Positions 3-41,120 of a DNA stretch of 64,000 bases are shown here, piece after piece. Numbering within the stretch: the stretch's first letter is position 1; every line of letters starts with the position of its first letter. Location: the NCBI GenBank assembly GCA_030704615.1, contig CM060734.1, positions 38,068,001 through 38,132,000 on the forward strand, in the 5' to 3' direction. The stretch is from Takakia lepidozioides (Eukaryota; Plantae; Bryophyta). The notes under the pieces were generated by a model that saw nothing but the letters and a program-made list of their open reading frames with translations, did not search any database and was not told the DNA's origin. The position numbers and the translations under genes were made by a program.

Positions 3-200
3 AACCCTGCTTGGAGAATAGCCAATGGTGATTTATGTCTTAGAGTGATTCATACTGGTGGAAGAACAACCATAGCACTTTGGATAAGAGAGTTAGGAAG
101 GTGGGTGAAGATAAATACCATGGCACGAGAGGTGACATGGGGAGGTAGAGTAGAGATGTTGCGAAATGGACAGTGGGAGTGGTATAGAGGTCAACATTAA
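3..200 (+). CDS. 3' end of an accessory ORF ('ORF0') upstream of gag in Gypsy element A; 5' part lies outside the window
   Basis: Stop-free frame from base 3 to TAA 198-200: NPAWRIANGDLCLRVIHTGGRTTIALWIRELGRWVKINTMAREVTWGGRVEMLRNGQWEWYRGQH*. It ends 71 nt before the gag ATG and aligns by eye with the upstream ORFs at 34041-34560 and 40680-41120. Confidence 0.6.
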   Translation, partial: NPAWRIANGDLCLRVIHTGGRTTIALWIRELGRWVKINTMAREVTWGGRVEMLRNGQWEWYRGQH

Positions 201-271
201 GGGAGTTGCGGAAAAATTAGAGTCAGAATTAGGTGTTGAAACAGTTTGAACTTTGATTAGAGAATAGAAGG

Positions 272-3200
272 ATGACCAGTCCAACCAGCATAGATGCGCC
301 TTATCATGGTAGGAATAGTGAGGATGTAAATGACTGGCTGGAGAGAATTCAGATGGAGGCAGATGTCAGGGATTTGAATGAGGACAAGACTTTCAAGGTA
401 GCAAGGCTCAACCTGAGAGCCAAGGCTGATGAATGGTACCGTAAACAAAACCCTAGACCAAACAACTGGGTGGACTTCAGGGCAGCAATTTCAGCCAAGT
501 TTGGTATCGTTGACTTGGCAGAAATTAGGCTAAGAATGGATACCATTAAACAGGAGAGTAGACAAAGGGTTCAAACATACTTCGATAGGTTGAACCGGTT
601 ATTTATAAGAAGTGGGGCGTCTGATTTGGAACAGAGACGTAGATTTGCAGCAGGTTTGAGACCAGAAATAGCAAGAGTAATGCTGGGCAGGCGCTTCCTT
701 GATGTAGAGGAAGCACTTGACACAGCCATTGAGATTGAAAGGGGCCTGGGAAAGTTAGGGGAAATACCTCTAGAACCATTGGAAGGAGATGATACAGATG
801 AGTCAGTTGTGTTTGTCAACCCTGTGGACAGAAGACTTGATCAGCTGAACACTACCCTACAGAAGTACTTTGATAGGGGACCAGTCATAGGAGAAAGCTC
901 GGGATCTAGAACACCACCTCGTGTTCGCCTTTGTAATGTTTGTCACAAAGAAGGTCACATAGCTGCATATTGTCCTGAAGGAAGAACCCCAGCTAAGTGT
1001 GACAAATGTCACCGGTTCGGGCATTCCACGGAAATGTGTGGTGTGAGATGCAACTTTTGCAAGCTACTCGGGCATACGGAGAGTGAGTGCAGTAGAAAAC
1101 TCGACCAAACTATGATGGGAACTCCGGGAACTAACTTTGTAGACGTGTTCTATGATGATGAGGATGATGTACTCGCAGAGATGACAGATCTGATGTCACG
1201 AAATAGTATCAATGAAGTCAGACTTCCAAGGACACGCATACCTGTCCAGAGTCCGATTGTTGAACCTACAGGGTCACCAGAAAGGAATAGTGAGAGCAGT
1301 GAACAGCCAAGCAAGACCAAGAGTGAAATCTACCCAAAGAACAATTTCAAGAATGCTATAGAAGGAGGTACGAAATCCAGAATCTTGAACCACTTCTACA
1401 AAGGGAGAATATCGTTGTCGCCCATGGACCTGATCATGACTGTGCCCGGAGAGCTAGACAAATTGAAAGGGCTGGTCAAAGTGGTGGAAAGAGCAATGGT
1501 ACAACAAAGGGAGACAACTCACAGTGTAGAAGTTGTGAAGGATGTACCAAGGCCTTTGTACTCAGCACACGCTGAGCCCACGATCTCGTATGCTTATACT
1601 GGTAAGGTTAAAGCGCTTCATGTAATGATTACAATGGGAGATTACCAAGTATTAGGCCAGATTGACACTGGTGCCATGCTTTCTGTAATATCAGCTAGTA
1701 CAGTCAGGGATCTGGGTTTGATGGGATCTGTCATTACTAGTAAGGATGTGAATTACAGAGTAGCCTCAGGTGCTCTTGAGACTGCAATGGGCAGACTTGA
1801 GGACATCAAGGTCAAAGTAGGAGAACTAACCAATCGTTTGTCCTTTATGGTGGTGAACACGGATACATATCACATGCTGCTAGGATTGGACTTTCTCAAA
1901 AAGTTTGGCGCTGTAGTGGACACCGAAGCTGAAACAATTCGCGTACGCTATGGGCCAGGAAAGGATTTTGCTCACTTCCCTTTGCACACCATCAATTATA
2001 ATGAGCCTGCAGTTACCAAAACAGCCTACCATAGAGGGGTCGAGAGTAGAATGAGATATGCAAGCAGTACGTCAGCAGGTAATGTCCTAACCCTGACGTC
2101 AGATGAACAGTACCTAGGCTTGTGGGAGAAGAAAAGAAAACCAGAGGAAGAATATGAGGACACGGAGGAAGCATCCTCAGGTTCTGACACCTCTAAATCT
2201 GATAAAGATGAGGAGATGGGAGGCTCTGAGGAGAGTAAGGAGGTAGAAACAGCACTGAGGGATGTTGAGGAAATAATAGACGATGTCAACCTAGGGGAGG
2301 ACTTGTTCGAGGACCAAGGGATGTCTGAACTCCTTCAGGAAGAGACCCATAAGAGCATGGCTGCTGCCATAATACAGGAAGCTTATCAGAAAGCTTGGAA
2401 TGGTGAACTAGGGAACAACAACCTAGAAATAGAGGATGACTTCCATGATTGGAATCAGGTTGTCACACAAGAGGAACGACAGAGAATGGCTAACTCTGTA
2501 AGCCAGGTGGAGGGAAAGAATTGGGAACCCAGTCAAGAGGAAGAAATGGAGAGTCGTTGGAGAAGTCTGAAATCCAGACTGCACATCAACCCAGAACTGG
2601 CCCCAGAACATAGGATAGAGCTTGAGCAAGAGCTGAAAGCAAACCAGGAATGCTTTGCTCTTAGCAAGGCTGACTTGGGATACTGCAGTGAGGTAGAACA
2701 CACAATTGACACACAAGGTTTTCCCCCTTGCAGAAGTCGTCCCAGCCGCCTATCAGAATGGGAGGAAGACGAGGTCCAAGGACAAATTGAGACTTTGATC
2801 TCACAAGGCAAGATGAGAGAGAGTAGTTCAGAATGGTCGTGTCCAGTTACCCTTCCACCAAAAAAGGATGGATCCAAGCGGTTTTGTGGTGATTTTAGGC
2901 CAGTAAACCGTTTGACCAGAAGGGACTCTTACCCTATGCCATTAATTCAGGATGTTTTAAACCAGTTGGGGAAAGCCAAGTGGTTTTCTGCGCTGGATTT
3001 ACAATCTGGTTTTTGGCAGATCAAAATGGACGACCGAGACATAGGCAAAACAGCGGTGATCACAAAGAAGGGATTGTATGAATGGCTGGTCATGCCATTC
3101 GGGCTAAAAAATGCCACTGCTACCTTTCAGAGAACAATGAATAGAGTGCTCAAGGAAGAAATCAAAGATTGCGCTAAGGTGTTTGTAGATGACGTCAATA

Positions 3201-6200
3201 TCCATAGCAAGGACTGGGGAGATCACGTGGGACATATAAAGAGAGTATTGAGCAAGGTTAGAAAGGCCAATCTTAGGCTCAATCCGGACAAGTGTTACTT
3301 TGCCAACTTACAGTTGGTATTCCTTGGGCATGTGATCTCTGAAGAAGGAACGTGGCCTGATCCAGATAAGATAGCTGCTATTGAAAGGTTTCCCTTGCCC
3401 AAAAACCACACTGCTCTCAAAAGCTACTTAGGCATGACAGGGTACTATAGGCCCTATGTCAAAGGATATGCTGGAGTGGCAGTACCCTTGTTCACTCTAA
3501 CCAAGAAGGATGTAAAGTTTATCTGGAGTGCAGAGGCACAAAACGCTTTTTCTACCTTACAGGTGAAGTTGGTAACTGCTCCCATCCTGGCAAGACCAGA
3601 TTTCTCAAGACCGTTCGTCTTGGATGTTGACTGGTCCATCAAAGGAGTAGGGGCAGTCTTGTCACAAAAGGAGTATAAAAAGGAGAGGGTCATTGCATAC
3701 GCCAGTAAGGTACTATCTGATGCTCAGCGCAAATATCACCCTATGGAGGGTGAATGCTATGCACTGGTGTGGGGAGTATTACATTTTCGACAGTACCTGT
3801 ATGGAACCCCTTTTGTAATCAGGACTGATCACAAACCACTGGAATGGTTGGCAACGGTAAGTGACGCATATGGACGCAGGGGTAGATGGATCATGATGTT
3901 ACAAGATTTTGAGTTTAAAATTGTTCACAGAGCAGGTGCTAGGCATGCTAACGTAGATGCACTAAGCAGGTATCCAGTGGGACCAGCTGAAGAAACCGAG
4001 GAAATCGAGGTATACTCTACTTCTCTGTACAGTCAGAAAAGAGAAGGGAGAAAGAGGGATGGAGCCTATCTTCTTAAGTTAGCTTGGGATAGGGGTGCCA
4101 TCAATGCTTCATTATTTCAATTTAAGGAAGGGAAGGAGGAGTTGAGAGAAGAAGCTCATAGGCAAGTAGGGTATAGCAGTGAAAAAGGGGAGATGATTTG
4201 CAAAAGAGAAGAGTACTATGCATGTGTATGGGGCCTTTGGCACTTCAAGGAAATACTGTTGGGAAGTCATTTTTCTTTAGAAACAGATCTAGATCCATAT
4301 TGGTGGCTATACTCAGAGCACCACATAGGCATAGACTTACTTGGTGATTTTTCATTTGAGTTCGTTCCGGGTATAGTAAGATCTTCCACAGGTGGAATGT
4401 TGACCAAGGATCATGGCATATTGAAAGGAGAACTGAAACCAGGCATAATGCCAGATGGAGAAGGAAAGAGGGTGACTTTTGCTGCACAGACTTTTGCTAC
4501 AAAAAAAAAACAAGGAAAGGGTATTGATCAATCAAGCTCTGTCAATCTGGTGAGGGAGGGTATTTGGAAGGATAAGGGTGCAGGAAGGATAGAGGCTACT
4601 GCAATCAGCAACAAGGAAAAGGAGCATCTGATGCCCTCTTGTCCCACCATCCATGTGATTACCCGAGGATCTTGTGCTCGTGATAAGCAGCTGAGCGAGG
4701 TACATCCAGCCTGTGAACTTGTGGAAGAGAGATTGAACAATGAAAAGGAAAGCTTGCAAGGGACACCATTCCTTCAACACTTGACAAGCACTCCAACAAC
4801 AAGAAGAACGCGGGTGACTTCCTCATCAGAATGCCCAGCCAAGAAAAACATGGGGGGTGAGTGTTCCACCAAGACGTTTTGTTCTTCAGACAGTGATGGA
4901 ACAAGTGGTTCAGAACAAGACACTTCTTCTTGCAACAAGATTGATGAAGCGGACTGGGTACCATGGACCACACCCACCAAAGCTACTCAGATGTCATTAT
5001 TACGTGAGGCTGAAAGATGTGGGAAAAGCTCTCTACTCAGCTCTGACCTTCATACAGCAGCTGGTAGGGAGGAAAGGCAACCTGATGTGCTTGATGATGT
5101 GGAGGTCATGCACCTCTTATGTTTTGGAGAAGTCAATGACTACCTGACAAAGGAGGAGAGCAAGAGAGTCAAGAGGCGGGCAAGGCAGTACTCCTATCTC
5201 AAAGGTGAGGTCTACTTTGATGGAAGGGTAGTTCCACCAAAGACTGACAGAGGGGCAATAATCACTGAAGTACATGAAACCACTGGCCACTTTGGAGTCA
5301 GAAGAACACAAGAGGAGATATGCCGACGTTATTTCTGGCATGATAGAACAAAACTCATCAGGCAAGTACTCAAGGGCTGTGGTAAATGTCAGATGGCCAA
5401 ACAGAACGGAGTGTTGCGCTCAGGTAGCTCAAAACTTCATAGCATTCCAGTAGTGGATCTGTTTTTCAGAGTTGCAATTGACACGGCAGGACCATTACCT
5501 ATAACCAGCAGGGGCAATCAGTACTTTCTGGTGGCAATCGATCACTTCTCAAAATGGATAGAAGCTGCACCAGTGGCAGATCATACAGCAGCCCTTGCTG
5601 CCCGCTTTCTTGAGGAAGAAGTAATTGACAGGTATGGCTGCCCACATACGTTGCTCACTGACAATGGCACAGAGTGGGGAGGTGAGTTTGAAGATACATG
5701 CCACGAATACGGTATAAAGAGGGAGCATAGTGCCCCCTACTGGCCTCAGTGTAACGGTATGGTGGAAAGAGTCATTAAGTCCATCAAACAGAGCATCACC
5801 ACCCTAGGAGTTGGAAACGACACTGAGTGGGATCAGAATCTCTATAAGGCCCTGTTTGGTTACAGAATGGGTGTCCATGCTTCCACTGGGTTCTCACCTT
5901 TTCAGGTACTTACTGGTAGAATTCCCAGGCTGGGAATTGACAACAGGTTGCATTTTCTTACAACACCAGTAAATTCTGATGGATCTGTAGCAGAAGTCAC
6001 ACTTATGATGCAGCAGAAAATCCAGCTTCTCACAGAGATGAAGGCAAAGCTGCGAAAGAGTGTGAAGAAAGGGCAGCGTCAACAGGCAAGAGATTATGAA
6101 AGAAGGCATCAAACAGGGCATACTTACTGCACGTTGATGGAGAACAGCAAGGTAATGATGTTGAGACCTGGAAAGAGGTCTTCCATGACATCTCCATGGG

Positions 6201-6391
6201 AGGGACCCTATGACTTTTTGGGATACAAGGACGCAGGAAGCACAACCAAGACTGGAGAAGCTGCACGAAGATGCAGGTTGAGAGATGGAGCAGACAAGGA
6301 ATGGGTAAGAAGTAGGAGGGATTTAAAACCCTTCATACCACCAATAGGTGTTCAGCCGTTAAAGGTGGTCAGTGAGGACCCTGACACTTAA
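272..6391 (+). CDS. gag-pol: Intact Ty3/Gypsy (non-chromovirus) Gag-Pol polyprotein, 2039 aa (element A)
   Basis: Single ORF with a capsid-like N-terminus, three Cx2Cx4Hx4C knuckles, protease IDTGA, RT (ALDLQSGFWQ, MPFGLKNA, FVDD), RNase H (LDVDWS..EGEC..TDH..DALS) and integrase (H-H-C-C, IDTAG/TDNG/VE, GPY). Order is PR-RT-RH-INT; no chromodomain. Confidence 0.97.
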   Translation: MTSPTSIDAPYHGRNSEDVNDWLERIQMEADVRDLNEDKTFKVARLNLRAKADEWYRKQNPRPNNWVDFRAAISAKFGIVDLAEIRLRMDTIKQESRQRVQTYFDRLNRLFIRSGASDLEQRRRFAAGLRPEIARVMLGRRFLDVEEALDTAIEIERGLGKLGEIPLEPLEGDDTDESVVFVNPVDRRLDQLNTTLQKYFDRGPVIGESSGSRTPPRVRLCNVCHKEGHIAAYCPEGRTPAKCDKCHRFGHSTEMCGVRCNFCKLLGHTESECSRKLDQTMMGTPGTNFVDVFYDDEDDVLAEMTDLMSRNSINEVRLPRTRIPVQSPIVEPTGSPERNSESSEQPSKTKSEIYPKNNFKNAIEGGTKSRILNHFYKGRISLSPMDLIMTVPGELDKLKGLVKVVERAMVQQRETTHSVEVVKDVPRPLYSAHAEPTISYAYTGKVKALHVMITMGDYQVLGQIDTGAMLSVISASTVRDLGLMGSVITSKDVNYRVASGALETAMGRLEDIKVKVGELTNRLSFMVVNTDTYHMLLGLDFLKKFGAVVDTEAETIRVRYGPGKDFAHFPLHTINYNEPAVTKTAYHRGVESRMRYASSTSAGNVLTLTSDEQYLGLWEKKRKPEEEYEDTEEASSGSDTSKSDKDEEMGGSEESKEVETALRDVEEIIDDVNLGEDLFEDQGMSELLQEETHKSMAAAIIQEAYQKAWNGELGNNNLEIEDDFHDWNQVVTQEERQRMANSVSQVEGKNWEPSQEEEMESRWRSLKSRLHINPELAPEHRIELEQELKANQECFALSKADLGYCSEVEHTIDTQGFPPCRSRPSRLSEWEEDEVQGQIETLISQGKMRESSSEWSCPVTLPPKKDGSKRFCGDFRPVNRLTRRDSYPMPLIQDVLNQLGKAKWFSALDLQSGFWQIKMDDRDIGKTAVITKKGLYEWLVMPFGLKNATATFQRTMNRVLKEEIKDCAKVFVDDVNIHSKDWGDHVGHIKRVLSKVRKANLRLNPDKCYFANLQLVFLGHVISEEGTWPDPDKIAAIERFPLPKNHTALKSYLGMTGYYRPYVKGYAGVAVPLFTLTKKDVKFIWSAEAQNAFSTLQVKLVTAPILARPDFSRPFVLDVDWSIKGVGAVLSQKEYKKERVIAYASKVLSDAQRKYHPMEGECYALVWGVLHFRQYLYGTPFVIRTDHKPLEWLATVSDAYGRRGRWIMMLQDFEFKIVHRAGARHANVDALSRYPVGPAEETEEIEVYSTSLYSQKREGRKRDGAYLLKLAWDRGAINASLFQFKEGKEELREEAHRQVGYSSEKGEMICKREEYYACVWGLWHFKEILLGSHFSLETDLDPYWWLYSEHHIGIDLLGDFSFEFVPGIVRSSTGGMLTKDHGILKGELKPGIMPDGEGKRVTFAAQTFATKKKQGKGIDQSSSVNLVREGIWKDKGAGRIEATAISNKEKEHLMPSCPTIHVITRGSCARDKQLSEVHPACELVEERLNNEKESLQGTPFLQHLTSTPTTRRTRVTSSSECPAKKNMGGECSTKTFCSSDSDGTSGSEQDTSSCNKIDEADWVPWTTPTKATQMSLLREAERCGKSSLLSSDLHTAAGREERQPDVLDDVEVMHLLCFGEVNDYLTKEESKRVKRRARQYSYLKGEVYFDGRVVPPKTDRGAIITEVHETTGHFGVRRTQEEICRRYFWHDRTKLIRQVLKGCGKCQMAKQNGVLRSGSSKLHSIPVVDLFFRVAIDTAGPLPITSRGNQYFLVAIDHFSKWIEAAPVADHTAALAARFLEEEVIDRYGCPHTLLTDNGTEWGGEFEDTCHEYGIKREHSAPYWPQCNGMVERVIKSIKQSITTLGVGNDTEWDQNLYKALFGYRMGVHASTGFSPFQVLTGRIPRLGIDNRLHFLTTPVNSDGSVAEVTLMMQQKIQLLTEMKAKLRKSVKKGQRQQARDYERRHQTGHTYCTLMENSKVMMLRPGKRSSMTSPWEGPYDFLGYKDAGSTTKTGEAARRCRLRDGADKEWVRSRRDLKPFIPPIGVQPLKVVSEDPDT

Positions 6392-8361
6392 AAAAAGGAG
6401 ACACACTACATATGTAGTGTGAATGCAGGGAGTAAAAATCTCAAGTTTGTGTTTGGCATCAGGTTTCGGCACTACTACAAAGGGAGTACCCTTCGTGCTA
6501 ATGAAGGGGAGGAATTGACCATAACTTGAGGTAATTCCATGGAAGGACTATGCTATTTATCTGCCAAGAACAAAATATGGCTAAGTTATGACATGCACCT
6601 TTTTCATCCCTAGGATGAATGATTTTCATCCATGATGTTGAACCCTAGAAGCGGGATGTGAAATTCGAAGGGGAAGAGTGCGTGGATCTTTTCGCAGCTG
6701 CTGCAGTGGTGTTGGCAGCACAGGATATCTGAGAAGGTTCCACCTACGCAAAGGGTATCAGCTTGCTTTTAAGAGAAATGTTAAGAACTCCTGCTTGGCT
6801 TTCTGTGCAAGAAGAAGCGGTGCCGCCTTCTTCGTAAGCAATGATCAAACCTGAGGGATCGGGTTTGTGATAAGGGCGGTGCACCACTGCTGTCGCCATG
6901 GTATTTGTGAGCACATTAATGAGGAGATGGAGTGGCTCAGCAGGTGTTGGGGGATGAGAAATGCAGGCTGGTGTGTATTATCGCCTCAGGTTGTCAGTGA
7001 TCAAATCTTGTAGCTGCTGTCTGTTTTTGAGCTGTAGGACCAGATCACTTTGTAAGGGAATCAGCTTGCCTTAAAGAGTGACGTTGAGGGATCTGGCTTG
7101 GCTTTCTGTGCAAGAGGAAGCGGTGCCGCCTTCTGGTGTGTATGGCGCTTAAGCTATCTATAAATAAGTTATGTATCTGCTCTCTGTCTTAAGGGCTGTA
7201 GGACCAGATCACCTCATAGGGAGGAAATGCACATGTAGAAGGATAGGGTAGAGGTTGGCAGGCACAAGGATGTGCCAGCAGCTGAAGCAGAGCCGTCATG
7301 CCTTAATGAGGACTGGAATCACGATAAGAAGAAACGTCGGAGATGGCTGACGAGGGAGAGGATAAGGTGCCTTCTTGACAGGCAGACCCACCACTTCAAG
7401 GAGTATAAGACAGATAAGTTCGAGGAGTGTACCCCCCCCTTTTGGTTTTTGGTTGCTTAGAAATCGCTTTGTGAAGTTTGAACTGTCTCTTGTATGTAGT
7501 AAGAGACACTGACATGTGAGGAAGAAAAAGAGCTTTGTAAATGGAATGAAGACACTGGACTTCAAACCAGGATGGGCTGGAGATGGATGCACCTGCTATT
7601 ACATTGTACAGTAGGAAAATGAATGGAAACAGGGTAGACTCGTTGCTGGGACAGAATGGTTACTGTTGTTGTATTCTTGTTCCTTGTTTCAACGTCATGA
7701 GCTTGTACAAACAATCTAGCCTGGGATGTTGACACATTGCAGCCAATGTGGAACTAGCTTAGTAGGTAGAGGAAACCAGAGAGGGTTAGATAGAACTGTT
7801 TGGAAACAACAAGAAGGGATGATGTGGATGGGGCAGAAAAACCAGCATCTGTTTGGGTTTGGATCTGATTCTCAGAGTGCTCTCAGCCCATGAACCACTG
7901 AGGTTCACAGCTGATGGGAAAAAGAGAGCTGTCAGGGTGTGTAAATTGAGACCTGTTGAAGGGTTGAGAGCTGTCTTGGGCAATGGTTATACCTGGGAAA
8001 AGTGGAGTGTGAAGCATCTGTCATTGGCAAGAGAGGGACTGATAAAAGGGCTGATTATATCTTGTGTGACCAAGGTTGATTTCAATGCTGGGTGCACTGG
8101 ATGCTTGGCTGAATGCGCATTGCATTGCATCATAGGCATGTTACAGTGGAAAGAGTGAGGAACCCACTTATCCTGAAAGAAAGAGAGAGGGAGAGAGAAA
8201 AGGACACAAGGGAGAGAGTTGACCAGCAAGAGGTTATGATGAGGAATGGATGATTGGGGAGGTAAGATAAAGAAAGCATGAACCCATGAAGGGCCAAACT
8301 GGTGGGCCTGCAAACTCATGGCAGATCTGCGTTGCCGCCTTCCAAATCGTGATCTTGTTAC
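6392..8361 (+). mobile_element. 3' UTR / probable 3' LTR of element A (right boundary uncertain)
   Basis: A purine tract AAAAAAAGGAGA follows the stop and is followed by TGTAG at 6413. Internal direct repeats: TTGGCTTTCTGTGCAAGA(A/G)GAAGCGGTGCCGCCTTCT at ~6796 and ~7099, GCTGTAGGACCAGATCAC at ~7031 and ~7195. TATAAATA at ~7159. The 5' LTR is not in the window, so the ends cannot be confirmed. Confidence 0.4.
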
Positions 8362-8728: not shown

Positions 8729-9445
8729 TCACACTACACTTCCTTCCTTCTCCATTGTGTCTGCCCGCTGCGTGATTCCCAACGTTGTTTGCTCTTCGGG
8801 TGTCAAGTGTACAGTGTGTCGAATCATTTGGAATAACAGGGGAGTAACCGATCTGGTAACCGTTACTTCATTCTTCTTCTTTGTCAACATGGTTAATTCT
8901 TGGGTCAACTTCTTCAATAAGAAGCCTGCCCAATTCACAATTTGCCCATTGAGGCAAATCAATACTTGGTCGATTAGATCCTTAGTGCAACAGCTGTGGT
9001 TTTGCCTGAGGCAAAGCAACGTGCTAAGTACCGGGGCTATCTTCTTAAAGTCGGGGTTTTTGTTGTGACTGCATGTGTAGCCCTGATCGGCTTGGTTGAG
9101 ATTCTCAAACAGGTCCGCAAGTACAAACCTTGGTGGTTTGCCGCTGTGTGCCGGTACGTCTAGACTGGGAAGGTGAAACACTTCCGCCAAGTACTTCTCC
9201 GTCAATAGAATATGTGTGTCACGGACATTTGTGCTTCGAGTACTGGTGTTGTAGTTCTCCAAGAACTCCCTGCACAGCTCGTCGTGCTTAAGGTTCCAGT
9301 CCAGCGTGGTGACAAAGTACCGCAGGCCAAGACTATCCAACGTCTCCTATGTCTCTGTGTCTTGCTTGATTTTCCACAACGCCAGGCTGATTTTGAAATT
9401 CACTTGCGCATAAGAACTTGGTGTCTTCCGCTTGGTGCCTGCCAT
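8729..9445 (-). pseudogene. Extra ORF downstream of integrase (Athila/Tat-type 3' accessory ORF), with one premature stop
   Basis: ATG 9445 (MAGTKRK...) is in frame, through TAG 9347-9349, with the 203-aa ORF (LGLRYFV..ELCREFLENY..HILLTEKYLAEVFHLP..IVNWAGFL). This motif pattern resembles the putative plant-transposon-protein ORFs of non-chromovirus Gypsy elements. Same strand as, and directly after, the integrase. Confidence 0.65.
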
Positions 9446-9645: not shown

Positions 9646-10963
9646 TTATGTCCTGCTGTCACCTAGGTTTAAAGCGCAGTTAGCTTTAATTGTTGGGCCC
9701 GTGCTTTCCAAGAAGCATTTAGCTTCCAGTAACGGTTTTGAATGGACCTCATCCATTTTCTGGATGTGCCTGATTTTCTTCCGTTGGTGTTTTCTTCGTG
9801 GTTTGTCTTGGATTGGACTAATGGTTAATGATGATTGTCCGATTTTGGTTAGTTTACGTTCTTCCATCTTGGATATGTTCATCCATTTTGGTATGTGGTC
9901 TATTTTTAGATGAGCAGCGTGTGCGCAGTACTTGCAGATTGGTTTAATGGCTTTGCCCTTATCGTCCGCCGTCTTTTGGCAATCCGTTGGATTGTGTCGT
10001 CGTTCTTTCTCCGTGTTATGATCGATGGTTAGTGGTGTATGATTACCACGGTCCGTGGGGTCATCTAGAATGTACATCTCGGAGTTTAACACAAGCAGTG
10101 ACTTGTTGGCTGCTTCACATTCGTTCACGGTTCTGTAGGGCATATGTGCTGGCCACGGTTCACCATACGGTATACGGGGTGGTAGTGCTGACGTCCAAAT
10201 GAATGGTGGTCTAAACGTAGCGGTGCCCTGAACTCGTATTGCCACCCGTCTTAGTACATGCCGGTTCACCGTCTCGTGATGAATGTAGTATGCACTGGCG
10301 GTTTCACGCTCCTCATCTGCGGTTTGGTCTTCCTCGTTGGCGTATAAGTCATGTATAAGTGCTCTGTCATGTATCCCTTTGTAGCCTTTTAACTTGTTAA
10401 TATTTATTCGTCCCACGAATTCTTGTTCCAAGGTCTGCAAATCGACAGTTCCATTGTCATGCACCCTTTTGATTTGAAATGGTCCCATCCATGGCATGTT
10501 CGATTTTCCTCCCAGTTTGATTTTCTTGATTTTTGGTAACCACAAAACAATGTCCCCGTCCTGGAAAGATTTTTCTTTCCCTTCGGATATTCTTTTTCTT
10601 CGTTGTTCTTGAATTCGTGCCATATTATCTGCAGTGTCTGCCCGAACTTCTTCTAGATGACATAACTCATGTTCCCTGACTCGTAGAGATTCTTCTAAAA
10701 CCCATCGTTCATGAGTTCCAGTTCGTAGTGTGGGTATCATGCATTCAATGGGTAATAGTGCCTCTACTCCATACACTAGTTGAAATGGTGTATGTTTCGT
10801 GGTCACCTTGTATGATGTCATAAATGCCCATAGTGTTGTGTTCATTTTGGTGTCCCAATCTGTACGATTGGCATTTACTATCTTGGTTAAGATAGTGCAT
10901 AATATCTTGTTGGTAGATTTGGCCTGGCCATTTCCTTGGGGACAATAAGCAGTGCTCTTGTGA
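9646..10963 (-). pseudogene. Gypsy family C integrase C-terminal half with a long extension (second copy of family C)
   Basis: HKSTAYCPQGNGQA..TPFQLVYG..WMGPF motifs. 10730-10963 is highly similar but not identical to 35080-35313. Cut at 10964 by a MULE insertion. Confidence 0.9.
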
Positions 10964-17704: not shown

Positions 17705-18011
17705 ATTAACCACTGGTTTATAACTTAGAAAAAACAGGTTAGCAGTATTACTGCCCATTTCCTAAGACATGCAACAGAGGTTGTCCGATGGTATGGTTTC
17801 AGAAACTATTACGAAGTAATCGTTTTAAGGATAGCTAAACCCTGAACATCATATGAATGTATCTCCACGGAGGCTGCTTAATCCTATTGATTAAGCTTAA
17901 CTTATAGTCTCTTTGACATGAGAGATCTTAGTCGTAAAGACTACAGTTATTCCATTCATGCAAACAATTGATAGTCAAGGCAAAACAAGAACTATCCTGA
18001 GTATGATGCAC
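17705..18011 (-). repeat. Truncated LTR of Gypsy family C
   Basis: Clear similarity to 41149-41450 (CCCATTTCCTAAGACATGCAACAGAGGTTGTCCGA..TTACGAAGTAATCGTTTTAAGGATAGCTAAACC). No PBS next to it. Confidence 0.85.
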
Positions 18012-19523: not shown

Positions 19524-19525
19524 AG

Positions 19526-26106: not shown

Positions 26107-26157
26107 TCGGGTGGTGGGCCCACCTCTCATTCACAGACGAGCAAAGGACTTCGACGT

Positions 26158-30577: not shown

Positions 30578-33500
30578 CCTTCTGTGCATAGTTGGGATTC
30601 ATTCTGTACCTCGCCTGTTTGATTGGTACTGACCCTGGTTCCAGTTCAATCTTATGATGACAGATCTCTGGTGGTATCCCTTTCAGATCCTCATAGCTCC
30701 AAGCAAATACATCTCTATATTTGATGAACAGACTCTTAGCTTCCTCAAAGAATTCTGGTTCCAAGTCAGCCCCTACTTTCACCATTCTCGGTTCCTCCTC
30801 AGTTCCCACATTCACTTCTCTCACCTGCTCATCAGCTGTGATTGTCCAACCAGTCACTACTTCATCCTGCAAACTCACAGTGGTTGGTTCTTCTAGGATT
30901 TCCATTTCTCCCTCTCTTTCTTCATAGAAATGTGGTGGGTAACTGCTTGTTTCACCCTCAATTGGTGTTGCTGTCACTACACCACAGCAGATACCTTTTA
31001 AACAACTTAGGCCCTCCAGTTGCATTTCTGCAACCTGCTCCCAACAGGGTAGCTTCTTGCTCCTCATCAAGTCCTTTTCTCCAGTCATACTCTTTGACTC
31101 TTTGAGGTCTTCTCGCAGCAGGTAGTCTACTAGATTTCTTAGTGGTGATTTGTATCTTGCACTTCCCATCATGCACAGTTAGTAACTGGGAATTCCAGTC
31201 ATGGAATACCCTGGCCTGTTTCAGCCATGGTCGACCCAGTAATAAGGAGTAGGCTTCCATGACATTATCCATTTTCAATACAGTCACTGTGATCTTAAAG
31301 ATCATCTTTTGAATCTGTATCTTAACTCTTCTTATTAAGCCTAATGGCTGAACACTTCTTTGATCTGCCATTGTTACTGTGAATGGGGCTGGTTTCATGT
31401 TACTTAGAACAAGCTTCTGCCTTAATTGGTCTGTTATGATATTCACTCTAGAGCCTCCATCTATCAGTACATCAGTCAAGTCTGTGCTTCCAATTCTCAA
31501 TTGGATTACTAGCATAGAATCATCAAAGTCCATGACTGTTTCTCGCCCTTCTGGCTTCACAGTATAGCTTGTCACCTTGCTCTTCAGGTATGTGTTCCCT
31601 GTCACATGGGCAATCTGATTAATTGCTTGATACAGCCTGTGCCTACAATGAGGTGCCACAGCCAGTAGCTGTCCAATGGTAATCTCCGCTTTGGACTGAC
31701 ATATCACTTCGGCCAAAGTCCCTTCATTACCCTGCACTTGTGCAACTTCTTCACTCACTTCATCTTCTCTTTCAGAATCAGAGGAATCTGCCATAGGGAT
31801 ATCAATACTCTTCTGCATTTCCCTTATGGTTTCAGCCACTTCCTTGTGTAGTTCCTTCTCATCTCTCCAAGCCTCATCATCTTCAGGCACATCACCGCCA
31901 TCCTCATTATCATCATCTTCCTCATCTACTGGAGGTATTAGTTTAGCTTTGCTTCTAGTTACTATCATCGTACTCACTTCTGGTACAAAACATGGCCTAA
32001 CCATGTGAGCTGCCACCACTGGGCCCTCATTCACAGGAGCTCTCATCTCATTTTGGTGTCTGATCCAGATCGGACAGGCTGCCTTGCGATGTCCTGCCTG
32101 ATTACAATAGTAACACAGTTCTTCACCATTGCGTCCTCGACCTTGATCTGCTCTGGGATTATTTCTATAATCCTGATTCCCTGGCTGATAATTACCCCTT
32201 GGATTACCCTGATAGTTGCCCCTGGGATTGCCTTGGTAATTCCCTCTTGGATTACCTCTTCCTTCTATACCATTGTTATAACCACCACGCCTACCATAGT
32301 GGTTCTGATCACTGTTTCTTCTTGGCTGGGGCTGCACTTGATGCACCCTTACTTGCCTAGGTTCTCTTGCAGCTGTCCTTCTGTTGTAATAACAATTCTC
32401 AGTGAAATGGTTATCCATTTTACAGATAGTACAGTGTTTCTCCTTCATATGGCATTCAGCTGTGGTATGGCCTTCATTCTGGCATTTTGCACACCAAACA
32501 CCCTTCCTCCAATGTGTTGCAGCCTCTGTGGCATACTTCTTCAAGATCTCTTCCAATCTTTTCTCATAGTTATCCCTCTTCAACTTTTCATTCTTCTTAC
32601 TCTTCCTCTTGAGCTCTTGCTCTTCTTCCTCATCTGACTCCTCCTCAGAGTTCTCATCCTCATTTTTCTCTCTCCTGAGCATTCCCAATTGCTCAATTCT
32701 GTTAGCTGTTTCAAATGCCTCCTCCACTGTATTATGGGGTAGCATATCCACTTTCTTTTGCAACTCTGGTCTTAGTCCATTCATAAACCAAGTCTTTCTG
32801 TAACCCTGGTGCTAGTACAGCAGCCAACTTTTTCATCATCAATTCCATCTTTTCCATGTACTCTTCAACAATTTCATACTTCTTTTGCTTTAACTATTGT
32901 AAACTTCCATACACTTCATCCTCAGTTTTACTTGTCCTGAACATATTTCGGAATGCTGTACTTAAGCCATTCCAGGTTAGGAAATGATTATCAGGGAATC
33001 TTGCATACCATTCACTTGCTTTCTTTATAAGTGAACAAGGAAATAATCTCATTTTGGCATCATCGTCATTCTCATTGTTCACAATACACATGTGCTCAAA
33101 TTGGCTGATGTGTACATCAGGATCCCCTTTTCCTGCATATATTGGAAAATGTGGTTTTGCCCGTGTTGGTTGTAATGCCATCTGTGGCCCTACCCCCTGC
33201 CCACTGACAGGTGCTGGCCCCCCTGCTGGTGCTGGTCCTTGAGGACCTGTTGTAGTTGTGGTGGAACTTCCACCAAGTGCTGGCCCCTGAGCACTCCCTG
33301 CTACTGGCCCCACTATATTCACAGTATTCCCAGCTCCAGTTGCACTACTTCCCACACTCCTTGTCCCCCCAGAGCCAGATCCAGATCCAGGCTACCTGCC
33401 TGATCCCCCTGAGCCGACACCTTCGTTGGCCTGTGATCCAAGTGCTCCACTTGATCCAGGTCCAACAGGTTGGGATGTCCTGGTTGTAGTCTCAACCTCA

Positions 33501-34000
33501 ACTGTTGGGTCTACTTCTTCATACTCTTCATCTTCCAATTTCTTCTCTCTGTTTTCATCTTCCAAGTTATGCCCTTGGGTTTCTTCTTCTTCACTCATGT
33601 AACTCAACTGAAGTGATGTGGGAGAGTCTGAACTCTCCGTTGGCTCTACCACATCCTCCTCTCCTTCCTAGCCTTGTGCCTCAGAAACTGGAGTTCCTGC
33701 TTTTGGTGTTCCATGCCAACTCTGATCAAAGATTTCCGTCAAATCTTTAATCCAGGGGTGTACCTCAGATCTTTCACCTCGTGGTTGATCTTCTTCCTGT
33801 ACCAATTCTCTTAATCTTTCTTGTAAAGAATAAGAAGGAGTAGCATCCAACTCTAGTTCTTCCGGTATGGGTGATGTACTCTTTGATCTTAACGGTGTGA
33901 GAGGTCCAGATGATTCCCTTATATCTATTCCTCTCTCCCAAAGATATGGATAATAGCTTTCAGATAACTTTCTCTTTTTGCTGAATATCTCTGGAGTCTA
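30578..34000 (-). pseudogene. Gypsy family B gag-protease-RT start, decayed
   Basis: YAGKGDPDVHI..LFPCSL..A.EWY gag motif, CCHC knuckles, an 8-aa GNPRGNYQ repeat x3, protease LIDGGS..LLLGRPWL, DVFAWSYEDLKGI..YRMNP. Confidence 0.9.
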
Positions 34001-34040
34001 GCTTCTCTTTCATCACTCATGTCCCATGCCTTTCATATCT

Positions 34041-34560
34041 TTAATGAGGCAATAACCAAAACTGTCTTCTGTAGTATCTCTCGTATATGCCTGGATTTCT
34101 TTCAAGCTTCAATACACTTTTGGCTATACTAGAAGTCTCCGTTACCATATAACCATATGGCAAACAAGTCTGAAAAGTTGTTCTTGGTGTGAGTTTGATC
34201 CACAGAATATCCTTAGGAATCCAATTCTTTACCAGTACAAGCTCTTCATGCATATGAGTGTAAACATTCACTTTCCTTTCCTCCCAGCCTTCAAACTCTA
34301 CTCGCTTAATGGATAGCAACGTTATCACATAAACCAGTGTTGGTAACCAACGTGCTCTCCCTCTACAGGCCACCTGATAAATCTTTATCACTCCTTTCTC
34401 CAGACCCCACTTAGGGTCAGCTTCATGCACTCTCTTAAGAATGTTTTCTTTACAACCGTCTGGCAATTCCAAGAACCTCTGAAAGAATTGTTTGGACAAT
34501 CTTTCCTTCTCAGTTCCACAGGGAATTTGATTCACATCAAATTATTTAATTCTCCAACCA
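34041..34560 (-). CDS. Accessory ORF0 upstream of gag in Gypsy family B (164-aa open part; one upstream stop)
   Basis: FLELPDGCKENILKRVHEADPKWGLEKGVI..WLPTLVYVITLLSIKRV..WIPKDIL. Homologous to 40680-41120 and 3-200. Confidence 0.7.
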
Positions 34561-35079
34561 CCATGATCCCACCAGATGCCTGTCACATCTGGTTGTTCAT
34601 GACCCGAGCGGCTTTTACTCACCCATCCCTTTGCTATCCGAGGCGGAAACTCCAAGATAGAAGAGTTGGATATCTCTAAACACTCAGCCCGCTCAGAACA
34701 ATCAGTCATGACCTACAGCTAGTGAATCATGGTTGTGCTTCCTATTTGTATTTCTTCTTGCCTTCATGTTAGCCAATTACCTTACTGTGCATACTGAAGC
34801 ATCAGATTGCTTCAGTATCTATCAAGTTCCAATCAATCATTCATTCATTCCACAACTTCACTCTTGTCTCTCTACACAGTGTATTTGTATCGAGTTAGTA
34901 TCAGATTATGATTTATCAAGTATCAGGCCAATGCCATGATGTCCCTAATCTACCCTACTGTATGTTTCTACAGCTTGCATGAATTAAGTCTCAATCAAGT
35001 CATCATTTCCTCTTCACTGTTTCCGCTCTCCGTTTCGTCTCCTCTTCCTCTGACCAAGTCGCGCTCTCCAAGAAGTGAT

Positions 35080-38000
35080 GTGGGTATCATATATTCAATG
35101 GGTAATAGTGTCTCTGCTCCATACACCAGTTGAAATGGTGTATGCTTCGTGGTCACCTTGTATGATGTCCTGAATGCCTATAGTGTTGAGTTCAATTTGG
35201 TGTCCCAATCTGTACGATTGGCATTTACTATCTTGGTTAAGATAGTGCATAATATTTTGTTGGTAGATTCGGCCTTACCGTTTCCTTGAGGATAGTAAGC
35301 AGTACTCTTGTGATGTACAATCATGAACTCATCCGTCAAGCATTTTATGGCATCATTTATGAAATGTGATCCTTGATCACTGACGAATTCCAGTGGGCAA
35401 CCAAATCGTGTGATGATGTTTTCATATAAGAATTTGGTTGTTGATCTGGCAGTGTTGTCTCTTAGTGCCTTGGCCTCTACCCATTTGGTAGTGTAGTCAG
35501 TGGCTGTGAGGATGTATTGGTTTTGTGTGTACCTTGCTAGAGGTTTAATGGGTCCCACGAAGTCTAGCCCCCATTGCTGAAATGGTTCTGTTGGTAGTAT
35601 TGGGTGCAGAGTCCCCTTCCCCGTTCGTTCTACTGGTCCCATCCTCTCGCAGACATCACACTGTTGACAGTGTTCATAAGTATCTCCAAATATAGTAGGC
35701 CACCAGTAGCCTGCTAGTAATTTTCTTTGCTGTCAGGTCCGAACTGAAGTGTCCTCCTGCAATTCCTTCGTGTAGTTCTTGCCATACTGTTTTGGCTTGG
35801 TATTTGTTTACACATCTTCTCATTATGGAGTCAATTCCTCTTTTGTACAGAATCCCTTTGATTAATGTGTATGGCTTGCTTTTCATTGAAAGCTTCCTCC
35901 TGTCATCTTTGGTGTAATCTTCAGGAAAAATTTCCCTGTGTTCAGATAGTATTTGATTGGCCATTGCCAATCATCTTGATCTTGATCTTGAATATCTTCT
36001 GATTCTTCTTTGGTGACTGTATAAGCTCCAATACTGATATTGGCCAATTCTTGATTGTTTGTGTCTTTGTTTTCCTTGTCATCTTCTTCTTCTGGATCTG
36101 GCTCTTCTTCAATAATAAGTCCTTCATCAAGAGGTTCATCTTCATCGGATGAATCCTCTTCTTCGTCCGTGTCGTCCATGAGTTTGAGATCATCTGGAAG
36201 GTCATAGTCTCCTTGAAACATTCCTTGAGCATTTATAGGATCTGTCTCTTCATCTGGTGCTTCCGGTTGAACAACAAACAGAAATGCATCGGGAAGTTGA
36301 TCCTCTACCCCCGTGGCTGGTTCTCCTGTAGTAATCCTTGACAGATGATCTGTTGTAACATGTAATCTCCCTGGTTTATGAACAACTTCAAAGTCGTACT
36401 CATGAAGAAGTAATAACCATCGAGCAACCCTGCCACTAGCTAGTGGTTGATTTGCTAAATGAACTAGAGCCTGATGATCAACAATAAACTTAAAGCGATT
36501 GCCAAGTAAATAATGCCGAAATTTTTGAACAGCATAAATCATTGCCAATGCTTCCCTTTCTGTGGTGCTATAATTATTTTTTTCGGCTGCTGTCAGTAAC
36601 CTGCTTGCATAATAGATTGGTGAATCTATTGTGCATGTCACATTCTGAGCTAGAACCGCTCCCAAAGCAATGCCTGATGCATCACTGTGTACATGAAATG
36701 GTAAATCCCATCTTGGATTTATCAGAATTGGTGCTGTTGTGAGTGCCCTTTTTAGTGAATCAAATGATTCCTGACAAGCTGGAGACCATCGGTATTCGGC
36801 ATCTTGCTTCAGTAGTCTATAGACTGGTGCCGCTCTGTGAGCATATTTGTCCATGTACCTTCTGTAATAGCTCGTCTGTCCAGAAATCTCTTGAGTTTCT
36901 TGGGATTTTTTGGTGGTGGTATTTTCTGGATAACCTCCACTTTCTTTGGATCTACCAGAATTCCCTGTTGGCACACAATGTGTCCCAATAATAATCCTGA
37001 ATTCACACAGAATGTACATTTTTCCGGGTTGAGACTTACTCCATTGTTTCTGCAGGCTTGTAGGCAAAGTTTTAACTGTGCCAAATGTTTGGATTTCTGT
37101 CCGAAGACACTGAAATCATCCAAAAATACCTGCATAAAATCATTGAGATAGTTCTTGAATATCTCAGATACTGCTCGTTGAAATGTGGCTGATGCATTGC
37201 AAAGTCCAAATGGGCATGACTTTGTAAGCATATGCTCCCCATTCAGTGATGAATGCGGTCTTTTCTTGGTCTTCTTCTGCCATTGTACCTGGTTGTACCC
37301 ACTAAACCCATCCATGAATGAGTACATCTCATGTCCAGCCACTGTGTCCAACACTATTTCAATGAAAGGTAGTGGAAAAGGGTCTTTCTTGGTTCCTACG
37401 TTTAACTTGCGGTAGTCCACACACACTCGTAGTTTTCCATTTTTTTTGGGTACTATCACAATGGGCAATAACCATTGTGGTGTCTCTACTGGGTATATGA
37501 ATCCTGCATCCAGTAACTTCTTGATTTCTTCCCAAACTTTAGCTGCATAGTTGGGGTTCATTCTGTAATGGTTCTGACGAATTGGTTTTGTGTCAACTTC
37601 CAATTCAATTCGGTGTTGACATATATTAGAAGGTATACCCTTCAAATCTTTGTAGTTCCAGGCAAATACATCCTTGTATTCAGTGAATAATGCAGTAGCT
37701 TCTTGTAGAAATGTTTCTTCAAGACCTGCACTTACTCGTATTATTTGTGGCTCTTCTACTGTTCCTAGATTCACTTGAATCAATTGAGTTTCTTCCGTTA
37801 CTGTCCATCCTGCGATTTCTTGTCCGATGGTTGCAATTGTGGCAGATACTTCATTGATTTGAATGTCTTCTTCCCTTTCTTGATAGAAACGGGCAGGGTG
37901 TTGAGGTGCGTTCATCGTTTCTTCCTCTGAAGCTTCCGTTCTCGAAGTATTTGGTTCTCCTTGAGTGTTCACCATGTGACATCCTACTGTTGTGGTATGC

Positions 38001-40547
38001 TTGACCACCAGTTGCCCAGTAGGTTCCAATTGTGGATGTGCTGCGTATACTGTGGCTTCTTCTTCATCCGACAGTCCACTGGACCAATCATACTCTTCCA
38101 CTATGCAAGGTCGTTTATCTCGTGGAATAGTACCTCGTTGCTTGGTAGTGATGGTGACTTTGTTATGTTTATTTTATTTTATTGTGAAAGTCTGACTTTC
38201 CCAATCATGGTGTGATTGGGCTTGTGTTAACCATGGTCGGCCAAGTAGTAGTGAATATCCTTCTGCCACATCCTCCATTCTGAGAATGGCTACTGATACT
38301 TCGTATACCAGTCTTGCTACTTCCATTGCAAGTCGTCTGATGATCCCCAATGGCTGCACTTTTCGTTGATCAGCCATTCGTACTATGAATAGAGCGGGTT
38401 TTATGTGTCCCAATCCTAGTGACTTCTTCACTTTTTCTGTCATGATATTCACTCCGGATCCTCCATTGATGAGTACATCCGTTACCATCTTCCTTGTAAT
38501 ACTTACTTGTATTGCTTCGTCGTAATCAGGAGTTTGTCGTATAGTTGTGGGTTTAATCGTGTAAACTTCTGGTGTTGGTTTTTGTTTTGGTGTGGGGGTC
38601 AATGCCTCGATTGCCCGGAACAAAGTTTTCTTGCAGTGCGGAGCAATTTTTAATAATTGTCCAATGGTAATTTGGGTCTTGGTCTGGCAGATTACTTCGG
38701 CCAATTCTGTTTCCGTGGTTGTATTCGTGGTCTTCATCGTTGGTCTGATTTGCTTATCTGGAGTTGGCTCCCCAGAAGGTATATGAGTACCCTCTCGCAT
38801 TTGAGCTATGGCTTTACTTACCTCCTGGTGTAAGCTCTTTTCCTCCTGCCATGCTGCACTTTATGGATATTGTTTCCGTTCTTCTTCAATCTCCTTATCT
38901 GGAGGTTTCTGTTTCTTGGCCTGAGTTCGGGTTACCGCAAGGGTATCCACTACAGGGGTTACCACACTTACGGCTACACTTGGTCCGGCTTCCATATTTC
39001 CCACTTCTGCCTCATGCTTGATTCGCAACTGGCATTCATGTTTCCAGTGCCCTTCTTTCTTGCAATAGTGGCATCTCGTGCTTTCTTTGTTTCTGGGTTG
39101 ATGTTCCCTATCCCTTGGTGGATATTCATTTTGTGGCCTCTGATAACGATTACCCATATTGTATCGTCTTGGTTCGTCCGATCCTCCCCGTCGGATTCCC
39201 CTACCTCTCGTGTGTACCCAGTCTTCTTGGCCCGTTGGTTGTAAATACAATGGCTGGTATTATGATTGTTCATATGACAAATATCACAGTATTTGTCGTT
39301 CATATGGCATTCCGTTGTCAGGTGTCCTGCAGTCCCACATGTGTGACACCTTGTTGCCTTTCGTGGCCCTTCATCTTTAAAATTCTTGATAGCCTCTGCT
39401 ATCTTCTGATCCAAAGTGGTTTTGTCAATCACTTCTTTCTTCTTTTGTTTGGGTTTTTCTTCATCATCAGAGTCTTCTTCCTCCAAGAGATCCTTGGAAT
39501 CTTTGCTTCTGCTCTGATGGAATCCCAATTCCAACTTCTTTGCAGTCCCTACTGCTTCAGCCAAAGTGTTGTTAGGCATGACTGTAACCATGGTTACGTA
39601 TTCATGATGAAGTCCATTGATGAACCATTTTTTGCAATCATCCCCTGGTGCTTGATCAGTCATTCTCTCCAGGTAGTCGACTACAATTCTTTCTTTTCTG
39701 TCTTAGGTTCTGTAATCATGTGAAGATTTCAGACGTGGATTTGTTGGATCTATATCTTTCTTGAAACGCGGGCTATCCGCCCCAATTTGGGAAAGCCAAC
39801 CATTCAATGCCTTCCGGGCCATTGAACAAGGAAATAGTCGGATCTTCTCTTGGTCTGCTTCATTGTAAATGGTGCACATTTTCAAAAGATTAGATATCTG
39901 GATCAGATTTCCCCATCATATAAAGGAAATGGTGGTCTGGTTTTGCTTACTGCTAAAGCCATCAGTGCAGCTGGTGCAACTGGTTGCCCAAACTGGGATG
40001 GTCCCGCTGCTGTTGGCTGGAGTGGTGTTGGTGTTTGTCTTCCAAACAGTGATTCAAAGCTAGGAGGTCCTTGTCCCAATGATAGTCGTCTTCCAGCTGC
40101 TGTCCCTACTAAGCTTAATGAATCTTTAAAAGCTTTGAGTGCAGTTCTGGTTATCCTTTCTGGAGAAGTGCTTTCACTTCTTTCACCTTCTTCACTCAGA
40201 ATGTTCTCAAATCTTTCTTCTAATATTTCAGCAAAACCTCGATTTGGACTTGTTACTGTAGAAGGTCCTGCAGATCTTTCTTGTGGTAACCATTCATCAA
40301 ATACATTACTGGCAACTTCTTCTGGTGTAGTGTTCCCACTTCCCACCGATCCGATTTCCTGATCTTCTGGTTTATCACTGTCAATTTGTCTTGATGTCTC
40401 ACCTTGAATAATATTCAAATTCTGTAATTCTGGGAACTTTTCTCTTAACCGAGCATATTTCTCTATTCGTTCAGCTCTGTCTTGTTTAGCTTTCTCTTTA
40501 ATTTCCTCATTCATTCCCACATCATATGTAGAATTCTTTTTCGGCAC
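35080..40547 (-). pseudogene. Family C gag-pol, frameshifted
   Basis: CCHC knuckles; LINGGSG..LLLGRPWL; FMDGFSGYNQ, FLDDF; HSDASG..EREALA; acidic insert; HEGIAGGHFS; GLDFVGP..SDQG..AESTNK. Confidence 0.9.
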
Positions 40548-40679
40548 CCTTTAAACAGTCTTGGTATGTCAGTAAAGAAAATTTATAGTGGTCTCTACCC
40601 TTTCTTCAAGATTTATCCTATCTTGCAAGAATCCGTATTACGACTTAATTTTCTTTTTTACTGATTGATCACCAAACTT

Positions 40680-41120
40680 TTAATGGGCACAATAATACCA
40701 TCTATCTTTTTCAGTGTATCTGACTTGCAATAAGTCTTTGGGTATCCAATACTACACTGCTTCTATGATCGGGTGACAATATTCATAATTTGAACATCAT
40801 TCTCTGAAAATATAACTAGTGTAGCAAACTTTTCTGATTGGGATTAGAGTAATCAATAGAGCTAGACGAGACAACCACTCTTCAGTTCTAATCCTACATT
40901 CCCAAGGTGCTCGTGTAATACTGATCACTCCTCCCTTCAATCCCCATTTGTCATCTTATTTCGCGACTGAAAGAAAGATTTTCTGTTGTATTGCTCTTGG
41001 TAAACCATGAAATTTTTCCAGGAATGTTTTCCATTCCTTTGCTTCTGTTGACTCGTTCTGTCGTGATTTCAAGAAATCACTGAGTAACCATCCTTCTTTG
41101 AGTACTCTTGAACTCAACAT
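40680..41120 (-). pseudogene. Accessory ORF0 of family C, with three internal stops
   Basis: One frame from ATG 41120: ..GWLLSDF..FHGLPRAIQQKIFLSVAK*DDKWGLKGGVI..EWLSRLALLITLIPIRKV..WIPKDLL. Confidence 0.7.

Follow-up and report, generated by a model that had tools for sequence, protein, structure and literature searches.

This study concerns a small open reading frame (ORF), here named ORF0, that lies ahead of gag in Gypsy retrotransposons of the bryophyte Takakia lepidozioides. The stretch analysed, called the window in the following, comprises 64,000 nucleotides (nt) of contig CM060734.1 (positions 38,068,001 to 38,132,000 of the forward strand) and contains three elements, A, B and C, for which an initial annotation had claimed a shared small ORF immediately before gag. 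Elements B and C probably represent one bryophyte non-chromovirus Gypsy lineage, with a primer-binding site (PBS) beginning TGGCGACCAT, that carries ORF0 as an extra cistron between PBS and gag. In the lineage of B and C, ORF0 is an accessory ORF under selection, and the same probably holds for the wider clade with this PBS.

The homology between the ORF0 regions of B and C, described as strong in the initial annotation, was borne out by protein-level comparisons. A tblastn search gave an E value of 2.6e-13 with 34% identity over 114 amino acids (aa), and the Smith-Waterman score of 160, compared with 30.6 +/- 5.3 for shuffled sequences (z about 24), was reached by none of 2000 shuffles. The homologous coding segment comprises about 130 residues, in B from approximately 34565 to 34164. 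Aligned as nucleotides only, B and C showed too many gaps for a codon-phase signal, and the regions were therefore translated and compared frame by frame, with stops read as X here as throughout the analysis. Only the ORF frame aligned (score 166, z 28); z was 0.6 and -0.2 in the other two same-phase sense frames and 8.9 in the best antisense frame pair. The same regions yielded no blastn match, and nucleotide identity over the aligned ORF0 codons was approximately 56%.

In the best aligned blocks of B and C, ORF0 showed 39% aa identity and a non-synonymous distance (dN) of 0.63, compared with 41% and 0.54 for gag, 49% and 0.39 for protease and 63% and 0.28 for reverse transcriptase (RT). Synonymous sites were saturated in ORF0, gag and RT and nearly so in protease (synonymous distance, dS, 2.5), and the long terminal repeats (LTRs), the spacer and the N-terminal linker of gag could not be aligned at all. 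Thus, as judged from these comparisons, ORF0 of B and C is under constraint at the protein level, at a rate about that of gag, because it can be aligned solely as protein, diverges as gag does and has saturated synonymous sites. Both proteins contain the reported LPx6I[LF]xxV motif (B, FLELPDGCKENILKRV; C, FHGLPRAIQQKIFLSV).

The window copy of B is open in the ORF0 frame from 34535 to 34041; an ATG of the same frame at 34709, inside the LTR, is separated from this stretch by a single TAA (34542-34544). Contigs of four public sequencing runs (X1, X8, X9 and X10) were placed on window positions 32500-35500. The B family turned out to be very high-copy, with 24,057 contigs from one DNA run matching the 3 kb at a likeness of at least 80%, whereas depth over the integrase of C (35025-35500) amounted to about 2-3% of that of B. 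Summed contig depth dropped from ~3.4e5 to 2.4e4 across 34924-35125, and contigs ran off at 34951; from this drop the 5' end of the B LTR was placed at ~34950. Many contigs joined or ran off at 34605-34608, and at their loose end stood the complement of TGGCGACCATA..., a PBS identical to that of C. In one contig, 27 nt that the window lacks were present behind 34604. Since other copies hold these 27 nt together with the PBS at this point, the window copy of B has lost its PBS by a 27-nt deletion.

The TAA at 34544-34542 likewise proved private to the window copy, as the codon was GAA (C at 34544) in 99.9% of X1 depth and also in X8, X9 and X10. Almost all further copies in the public runs were free of both defects. 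When both defects were undone on paper, the frame extended without interruption from the ATG at 34709 through the PBS and up to the TAA at 34043-34041 (669 + 27 = 696 nt). The two common variants listed within ORF0 of B (34506 and 34644) were both synonymous third-position changes. Runs X9 and X10, labelled as two other organisms, contained B copies that were 91-94% identical and had zero indels inside ORF0. At the sites listed, the window copy departed from the family majority at many positions in 33467-33680 (the gag N-terminus) and in ORF0 only by its private stop.

In B, C and the outside relative L003 (see below), ORF0 occupies the same place, on the element's own strand between the 5' LTR with its PBS and the polyprotein ORF. 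The LTR end and the PBS lie directly upstream, at the junction 34605/34604 in B and, in C, with the LTR ending at 41149 and the PBS at 41146-41130. The gag ATG follows the end of ORF0 after 18 nt in B, 165 nt in C and 116 nt in L003. In B it stands at 34020 in a frame other than that of ORF0, a stop in the gag frame lies just upstream of it, and the gag N-terminus begun there resembles the gag starts of C and L003. In C, four stops separate the ORF0 end at 40680 from the gag start at 40514. ORF0 comprises about 145 codons in the C remnant, 214 in the outside relative and, by reconstruction, 231 in intact B copies. A -1 frameshift from ORF0 into gag was also considered and was ruled out, since in A, B and L003 the stretch that separates ORF0 from the gag ATG has stops in the gag frame.

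Relatives outside this genome were found by searching with the RT of C, and their contigs were examined; a search with gag-protease of B was swamped by low-complexity words and yielded L001. The RT of L003 is 51% identical to that of C. L003 has the PBS TGGCGACCATGCTGGGG at 6821-6837, directly past a '...CA', followed by an intact ORF0 of 214 codons (6930-7574), a 116-nt spacer and a gag that starts at 7691 like that of C. Its ORF0 contains the motif SIDELPEELQALIFSKV. The 90% cluster of this ORF0 held eight variants from NCBI, ENA, JGI and Logan contigs, all 214 aa long. Among five DNA copies of the family (L003 and four further contigs) dN/dS was 0.09-0.24, well below 1, and the polymorphic codons were 16 synonymous-only against 13 non-synonymous. 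ORF0 of L003 is clearly a gene, and it is probably homologous to ORF0 of B and C, as suggested by the motif.

The PBS core TGGCGACCAT was found at the LTR ends of the window (41136-41146), L001 (6462-6471), L003 (6821-6830), L006 (5547-5556) and L008 (7457-7466), and the relatives that share it come from Selaginella, Riccia and three ENA assemblies. As the core lies directly 3' of the 5' LTR in all of them, the primer is common to the whole lineage. The core may resemble the 3' end of an Arg-type tRNA; no tRNA gene was found within the window. In the Riccia relative (L006) the leader is long and contains ORFs, none of them significantly similar to ORF0 of B, C or L003, and the Selaginella relative (L001) has a decayed leader of 3 kb in which no ORF0 was detectable.

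Within the outside family, nucleotide conservation was distributed unevenly. L009 resembles L003 in having an intact ORF0 of 214 codons, followed after a spacer of 116 nt by an intact gag, which measures at least 542 aa. Between the two, identity was 81% in the leader, 91% in ORF0 codons 1-62, 81.5% in the gag N-terminus and 86.5% in the capsid. ORF0 codons 63-214 and the whole spacer up to the gag ATG (L003 7116-7690, 572 nt) were 100% identical. Comparison of L003 with L011 and L012 ranked the segments in the same way. Selection on the protein cannot account for the block, since synonymous sites and the non-coding spacer are identical as well. It may have arisen by recombination between co-packaged RNAs, through assembly chimeras or from an RNA element that overlaps 3' ORF0 up to the gag AUG; we favour the last, with a cis-acting RNA that would serve gag translation or packaging.

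Several observations weigh against ORF0 as a selected cistron of this lineage. Both window copies of ORF0, in B and in C (in-frame stops at 40956-58, 40797-99 and 40752-54), are damaged. A contig from X8, a run only guessed to be RNA, covers ORF0 of B and carries two stops. The identical block described above weakens the dN/dS argument for the part of ORF0 that it covers. The link from B and C to L003 consists of a 21-residue motif, the position and the shared PBS, and it is of marginal significance: pairwise scores of L003 ORF0 with B or C were not significant, a B+C profile picked exactly the shared motif but 34 of 1000 shuffles did as well, and hhalign picked the same motif with P 0.046. 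The pattern LPx6I[LF]xxV occurred about 5 times in the roughly 100,000 codons of the six loci scanned. Two close relatives with the same PBS, L007 and L008, have short leaders devoid of ORF0, which is thus dispensable for the lineage as a whole and not universal in it.

Database searches were equally unhelpful to ORF0 as a gene. A phmmer search of 1.84 billion representative proteins with ORF0 of B returned no homologue and only two repeat-protein artefacts; high-copy repeats assemble into contigs of 150-500 nt, which in part explains such missing entries. Pfam and PDB sequence searches with ORF0 of B, the C pieces and ORF0 of L003 found nothing relevant, and so the check for an already described domain came out empty. 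AlphaFold2 models were unusable (pLDDT 34 for B and 36 for L003) and gave no independent sign of a folded domain. A viral-contig scan with L003 ORF0 also found nothing, and a metagenome scan with B ORF0 hit one GC-rich, apparently bacterial contig through a single 8-residue pattern, which was rejected as chance.

Two other explanations would dispense with a separate gene. If ORF0 were an N-terminal domain of Gag, the separating stops would reflect decay of these particular copies; the ORF0 frame of C is indeed the frame of its gag N-terminal ORF (41147 to 40547 = 600 nt), and the window copies of B and C are both degenerate. This is nevertheless highly improbable, since gag of B starts in a different frame just past the ORF0 stop, since the outside family combines an intact ORF0 with its own stop, a spacer with gag-frame stops and an intact gag, and since the stop density in the spacers of B and C (3-4 per 35-45 codons) exceeds that inside ORF0. 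The segment might instead be a conserved non-coding leader, that is, a packaging, dimerisation or translation-control RNA in which the open frame is incidental. Retroviral leaders hold such signals at this very place, and in the outside family codons 63-214 and the non-coding spacer are kept at the nucleotide level past any coding need. Single-sequence folding of the leaders was not decisive, with C folding better than shuffles (z -4.3) but B no better than them (z -1.45), and Rfam gave no matches. A leader without a coding function is unlikely, because the conservation between B and C is visible solely as amino acids of one frame, while blastn is empty, and because all eight outside variants keep 214 codons and show a synonymous excess also in codons 1-62, where copies differ.

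The remaining alternatives accept a protein but enlarge the claim. According to the initial annotation, ORF0 has an F-box-like motif and might recruit the SKP1/SCF ubiquitin ligase of the host, for instance for the destruction of a silencing factor in the manner of polerovirus P0. Some features agree with this: the spacing of LPx6I[LF]xxV is that of F-box helix 1, conservation among B, C and the outside relative (there LPEELQALIFSKV) is highest in the motif, the motif looks canonical in L003 (LPEELQALIF), and with residues 8-80 two F-box clusters ranked 2 and 4 among the named clusters of the Atlas. The Atlas scores of 0.81 and 0.76 (63 and 48 shared features) lie in a range that shuffled proteins reach one third of the time, and chance would place a 5-position motif in ~1% of ORFs this long, with many known motifs that could have been 'recognised'. 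Pfam F-box and F-box-like models (PF00646, PF12937 and relatives) did not match B, C or L003 at E values up to 10, where HMMER filters may hide very weak matches, and no F-box protein was among the PDB sequence hits. A complete F-box module has about 45 residues in three helices, of which ORF0 has the LPx6I[LF]xxV stretch only; the second and third helices, with the conserved Trp ~27 residues past the Leu, are absent from the sequence. The residues past the motif are not conserved, DxKWGLxxGVI in B/C against NNGREGIRAHV in L003, and neither fits the second half of an F-box. Nor did Pfam reveal a substrate-recruiting domain (LRR, WD40, Kelch, FBA and so on) in the three proteins. The F-box identity thus did not hold beyond the first-helix spacing, and recruitment of SKP1/SCF by ORF0 is very unlikely. 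We regard as equally doubtful a broader version, in which ORF0 would be a minimal F-box-like or other host-factor-recruiting adaptor, encoded by a family that ranks among the most abundant retrotransposons of this moss, kept across the bryophyte Gypsy lineage through the LPx6I[LF]xxV helix and aiding evasion of silencing or degradation. GW/WG motifs of the Argonaute-hook type were considered for B and C as well; they are not kept in the L003 protein.

The other enlargement is that the upstream ORF of element A belongs to the same gene family, so that three divergent families would share ORF0. As had been claimed, A has a separate same-strand ORF ahead of gag: its frame is open from base 3 to the TAA at 198-200, and the gag-pol ATG at 272 follows after a spacer of 71 nt. 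Besides position and strand, the ORF by eye fits [ND]PxWx[IL]xxG and is Trp-rich and basic like those of B and C. When shuffled controls were applied, the significance seen for B and C did not extend to A: the A-B score of 29 was reached by 620 of 2000 shuffles and the A-C score of 25 by 1282 of 2000, and a B+C profile gave -1.6 bits on the A ORF, with 572 of 1000 shuffles doing as well. Furthermore, about one frame in ten at a window edge would be open over 66 codons by chance, and the richness in Trp, Gly and Arg follows from a purine- and G-rich sense strand. The RT of A is just 31% identical to that of C (B and C, about 63%); at this distance, and with a fast-evolving ORF, homology would be invisible even if it existed. 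An exact look-up of the A polyprotein found nothing on record, and identity to its relatives in the protein database did not exceed 37%. Of the three families said to share the ORF, B and C stand; common ancestry with A is improbable, and the A ORF is at most a positional analogue of ORF0.

With ORF0 as an extra cistron of the B/C lineage, it would be translated as the first long cistron of the full-length genomic RNA. Its predicted product would be a small basic protein (pI about 9.4), with a putative helix-LP-helix motif followed by a hydrophobic core. In B, 14 AUGs lie between the starts of ORF0 and gag. This excludes leaky scanning, and ribosomes would have to arrive at gag through reinitiation, shunting or internal entry. 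In addition, the 3' two-thirds of ORF0 and the spacer probably act as a cis-acting RNA element for gag translation or packaging, as suggested by this block being the most conserved at the nucleotide level. As for the protein itself, our best guess is that it assists the particle or RNA of its own element as a cofactor or else serves as an adaptor that connects to a host factor.

Among plant Ty3/gypsy non-chromoviruses, extra ORFs (eORFs) located 5' of gag form an established class, for example ORF1 of Ogre (PMC6317226, PMC7264820). In a survey with an operational cut-off of 250 codons they were highly heterogeneous, forming 314 similarity groups, most of them without a CDD hit (Neumann et al. 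2019, PMC6317226). In Phygy and Selgy, the two non-chromovirus clades that the survey describes from non-seed plants, the polyprotein coding sequence was described to fill nearly the whole internal region, and the clades of moss and Selaginella were thus presented as free of extra ORFs (PMC6317226); ORF0 was found here in a bryophyte lineage. The initial annotation had proposed an undescribed accessory protein. In B and C ORF0 does behave as a protein-coding accessory gene in a frame-specific manner, but as a kind it is not undescribed (PMC6317226, PMC7264820); it is a lineage-specific 5' extra ORF and a further example of the known class. Like the plant eORF-5'F, it is separate, on the same strand, located between 5' LTR/PBS and gag, family-specific and devoid of known domain or function. 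It is much shorter than the surveyed ones, and at 214-231 codons (fewer in the C remnant) it would have been missed by the survey. Pfam scans were empty also for the plant mobile domain (PF10536), Transposase_28 (PF04195) and Athila ORF-1 (PF03078), which occur in some eORFs of Ogre, Retand and Athila.

Likenesses to other systems are partial. Intact ORF0 of B starts in U5 and reads through the PBS, like the GAG ORF of yeast Ty1, whose start is in the 5' LTR and which also spans the PBS. Unlike in Ty1, ORF0 is an additional cistron before gag, and in C and the outside relative it starts past the PBS. The glyco-Gag of murine leukaemia virus is an upstream-initiated extension of Gag, in frame and continuous with it, that has a role in host interaction; ORF0 similarly lends extra coding capacity to the leader ahead of the gag AUG, but it is terminated and separated from gag. 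With polerovirus P0 and cellular F-box proteins ORF0 shares an LP-initiated helix whose hydrophobic residues are spaced as in F-box helix 1; it differs from them in having no profile match, no second half of the F-box and no substrate-binding domain.

Extra ORFs of plant retrotransposons are common yet functionally opaque. ORF0, coming from an extremely successful bryophyte family, offers a compact candidate for study, and public assemblies of other samples contain a counterpart that is intact and under selection. How gag comes to be translated when a long cistron precedes it is a further question raised by ORF0. The spacer, being conserved, points to a dedicated RNA element; by itself it is no proof of an SCF-hijacking suppressor.

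The features on which the analysis is based are collected in Table 1. Elements B and C are colinear and both lie on the minus strand. C shows the order LTR, PBS, small ORF, gag, protease, RT and RNase H and is truncated in integrase near 35079. Its LTR ends were defined by alignment with the LTR at 17706-18011, the likeness extending from TGTATCAT to ...TTAACA. B starts at ~34950 and is rearranged further downstream.

Table 1. Positions of the elements A, B and C and of their parts in the window.
Feature	Position	Strand	Remarks
Element A gag-pol ORF	272..6391	+	Intact, 2039 aa; protease, RT, RNase H and integrase; no chromodomain
Element A upstream ORF	3..200	+	5' part cut by the window start; TAA at 198-200
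Element B ORF0	34041..34709	-	ATG 34709 inside the LTR; stop TAA 34043-34041
Element B 5' LTR	34606..34950	-	5' boundary approximate; 3' end adjoins the deleted PBS
Element B gag start	33929..34020	-	From three-frame translation; ATG 34020; frame breaks further on in the window copy
Element C ORF0 remnant	40680..41120	-	ATG 41120; end 40680-82
Element C PBS	41130..41146	-	TGGCGACCATACTGGGG, 2 nt past the LTR end
Element C 5' LTR	41149..41451	-	TG...CA, about 303 bp
Element C gag N-terminal ORF	39903..40547	-	First ATG 40514; capsid, protease and RT lie downstream
C-family solo or truncated LTR	17706..18011	-	Ends exactly at the LTR/PBS boundary; served to define the C LTR

Further remains of such elements were observed in the window. 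The RNase H segment of B is inverted onto the plus strand (27914-28930), and a fragment with integrase-SH3 and chromodomain (Chromo E 2e-11), apparently derived from a chromovirus, is fused into the ORF upstream of the B RT (30192-31172, minus strand). The C-family LTR at 17706-18011 lies within the protease region of another minus-strand Gypsy element (17928-19524), whose gag occupies 18404-19524 and whose protease Pfam matches fall in 17931-18464. A C-terminal integrase fragment is contained in 9646-10980, where 10729-10963 shows 91% nucleotide identity to 35079-35313 of C; the fragment runs on into a tail of ~250 aa without a Pfam match. The ORF at 8729-9340 (203 aa) had no match.

Outside the Gypsy elements, the minus-strand ORF 11803-12699 (298 aa) contains by eye a SWIM-like CxC...CxH motif as in Mutator-type transposases; at a threshold of 1e-3 Pfam gave no match for this ORF or for those at 14897-15361 and 16100-16870. 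A LINE-like element extends on the plus strand from 50682 to 55637, with a zinc-knuckle ORF (50682-51350), an endonuclease/exonuclease/phosphatase domain (52702-53814) and RT-like ORFs recognised by eye up to 55637. A host-type BAHD acyltransferase gene is located at 57845-59566 on the minus strand (Pfam Transferase, E 1.6e-59), and a partial duplicate on the same strand lies ~11.4 kb away (47616-48071; 47816-47987 is 98% identical to 59260-59431). Tandem duplications were found at 25280-26451 and 26500-26870, with units of about 410 bp and 160 bp that are 96-100% identical, adjoining a very GC-rich stretch, several frames of which are open and read as runs of Pro, Gly and Arg. Finally, 23850-24833 and 60574-61102 form an inverted repeat pair ~36 kb apart (94% identity over 533 nt), accompanied by a local inverted copy; the pair may represent DNA transposon ends or two copies of a short element.

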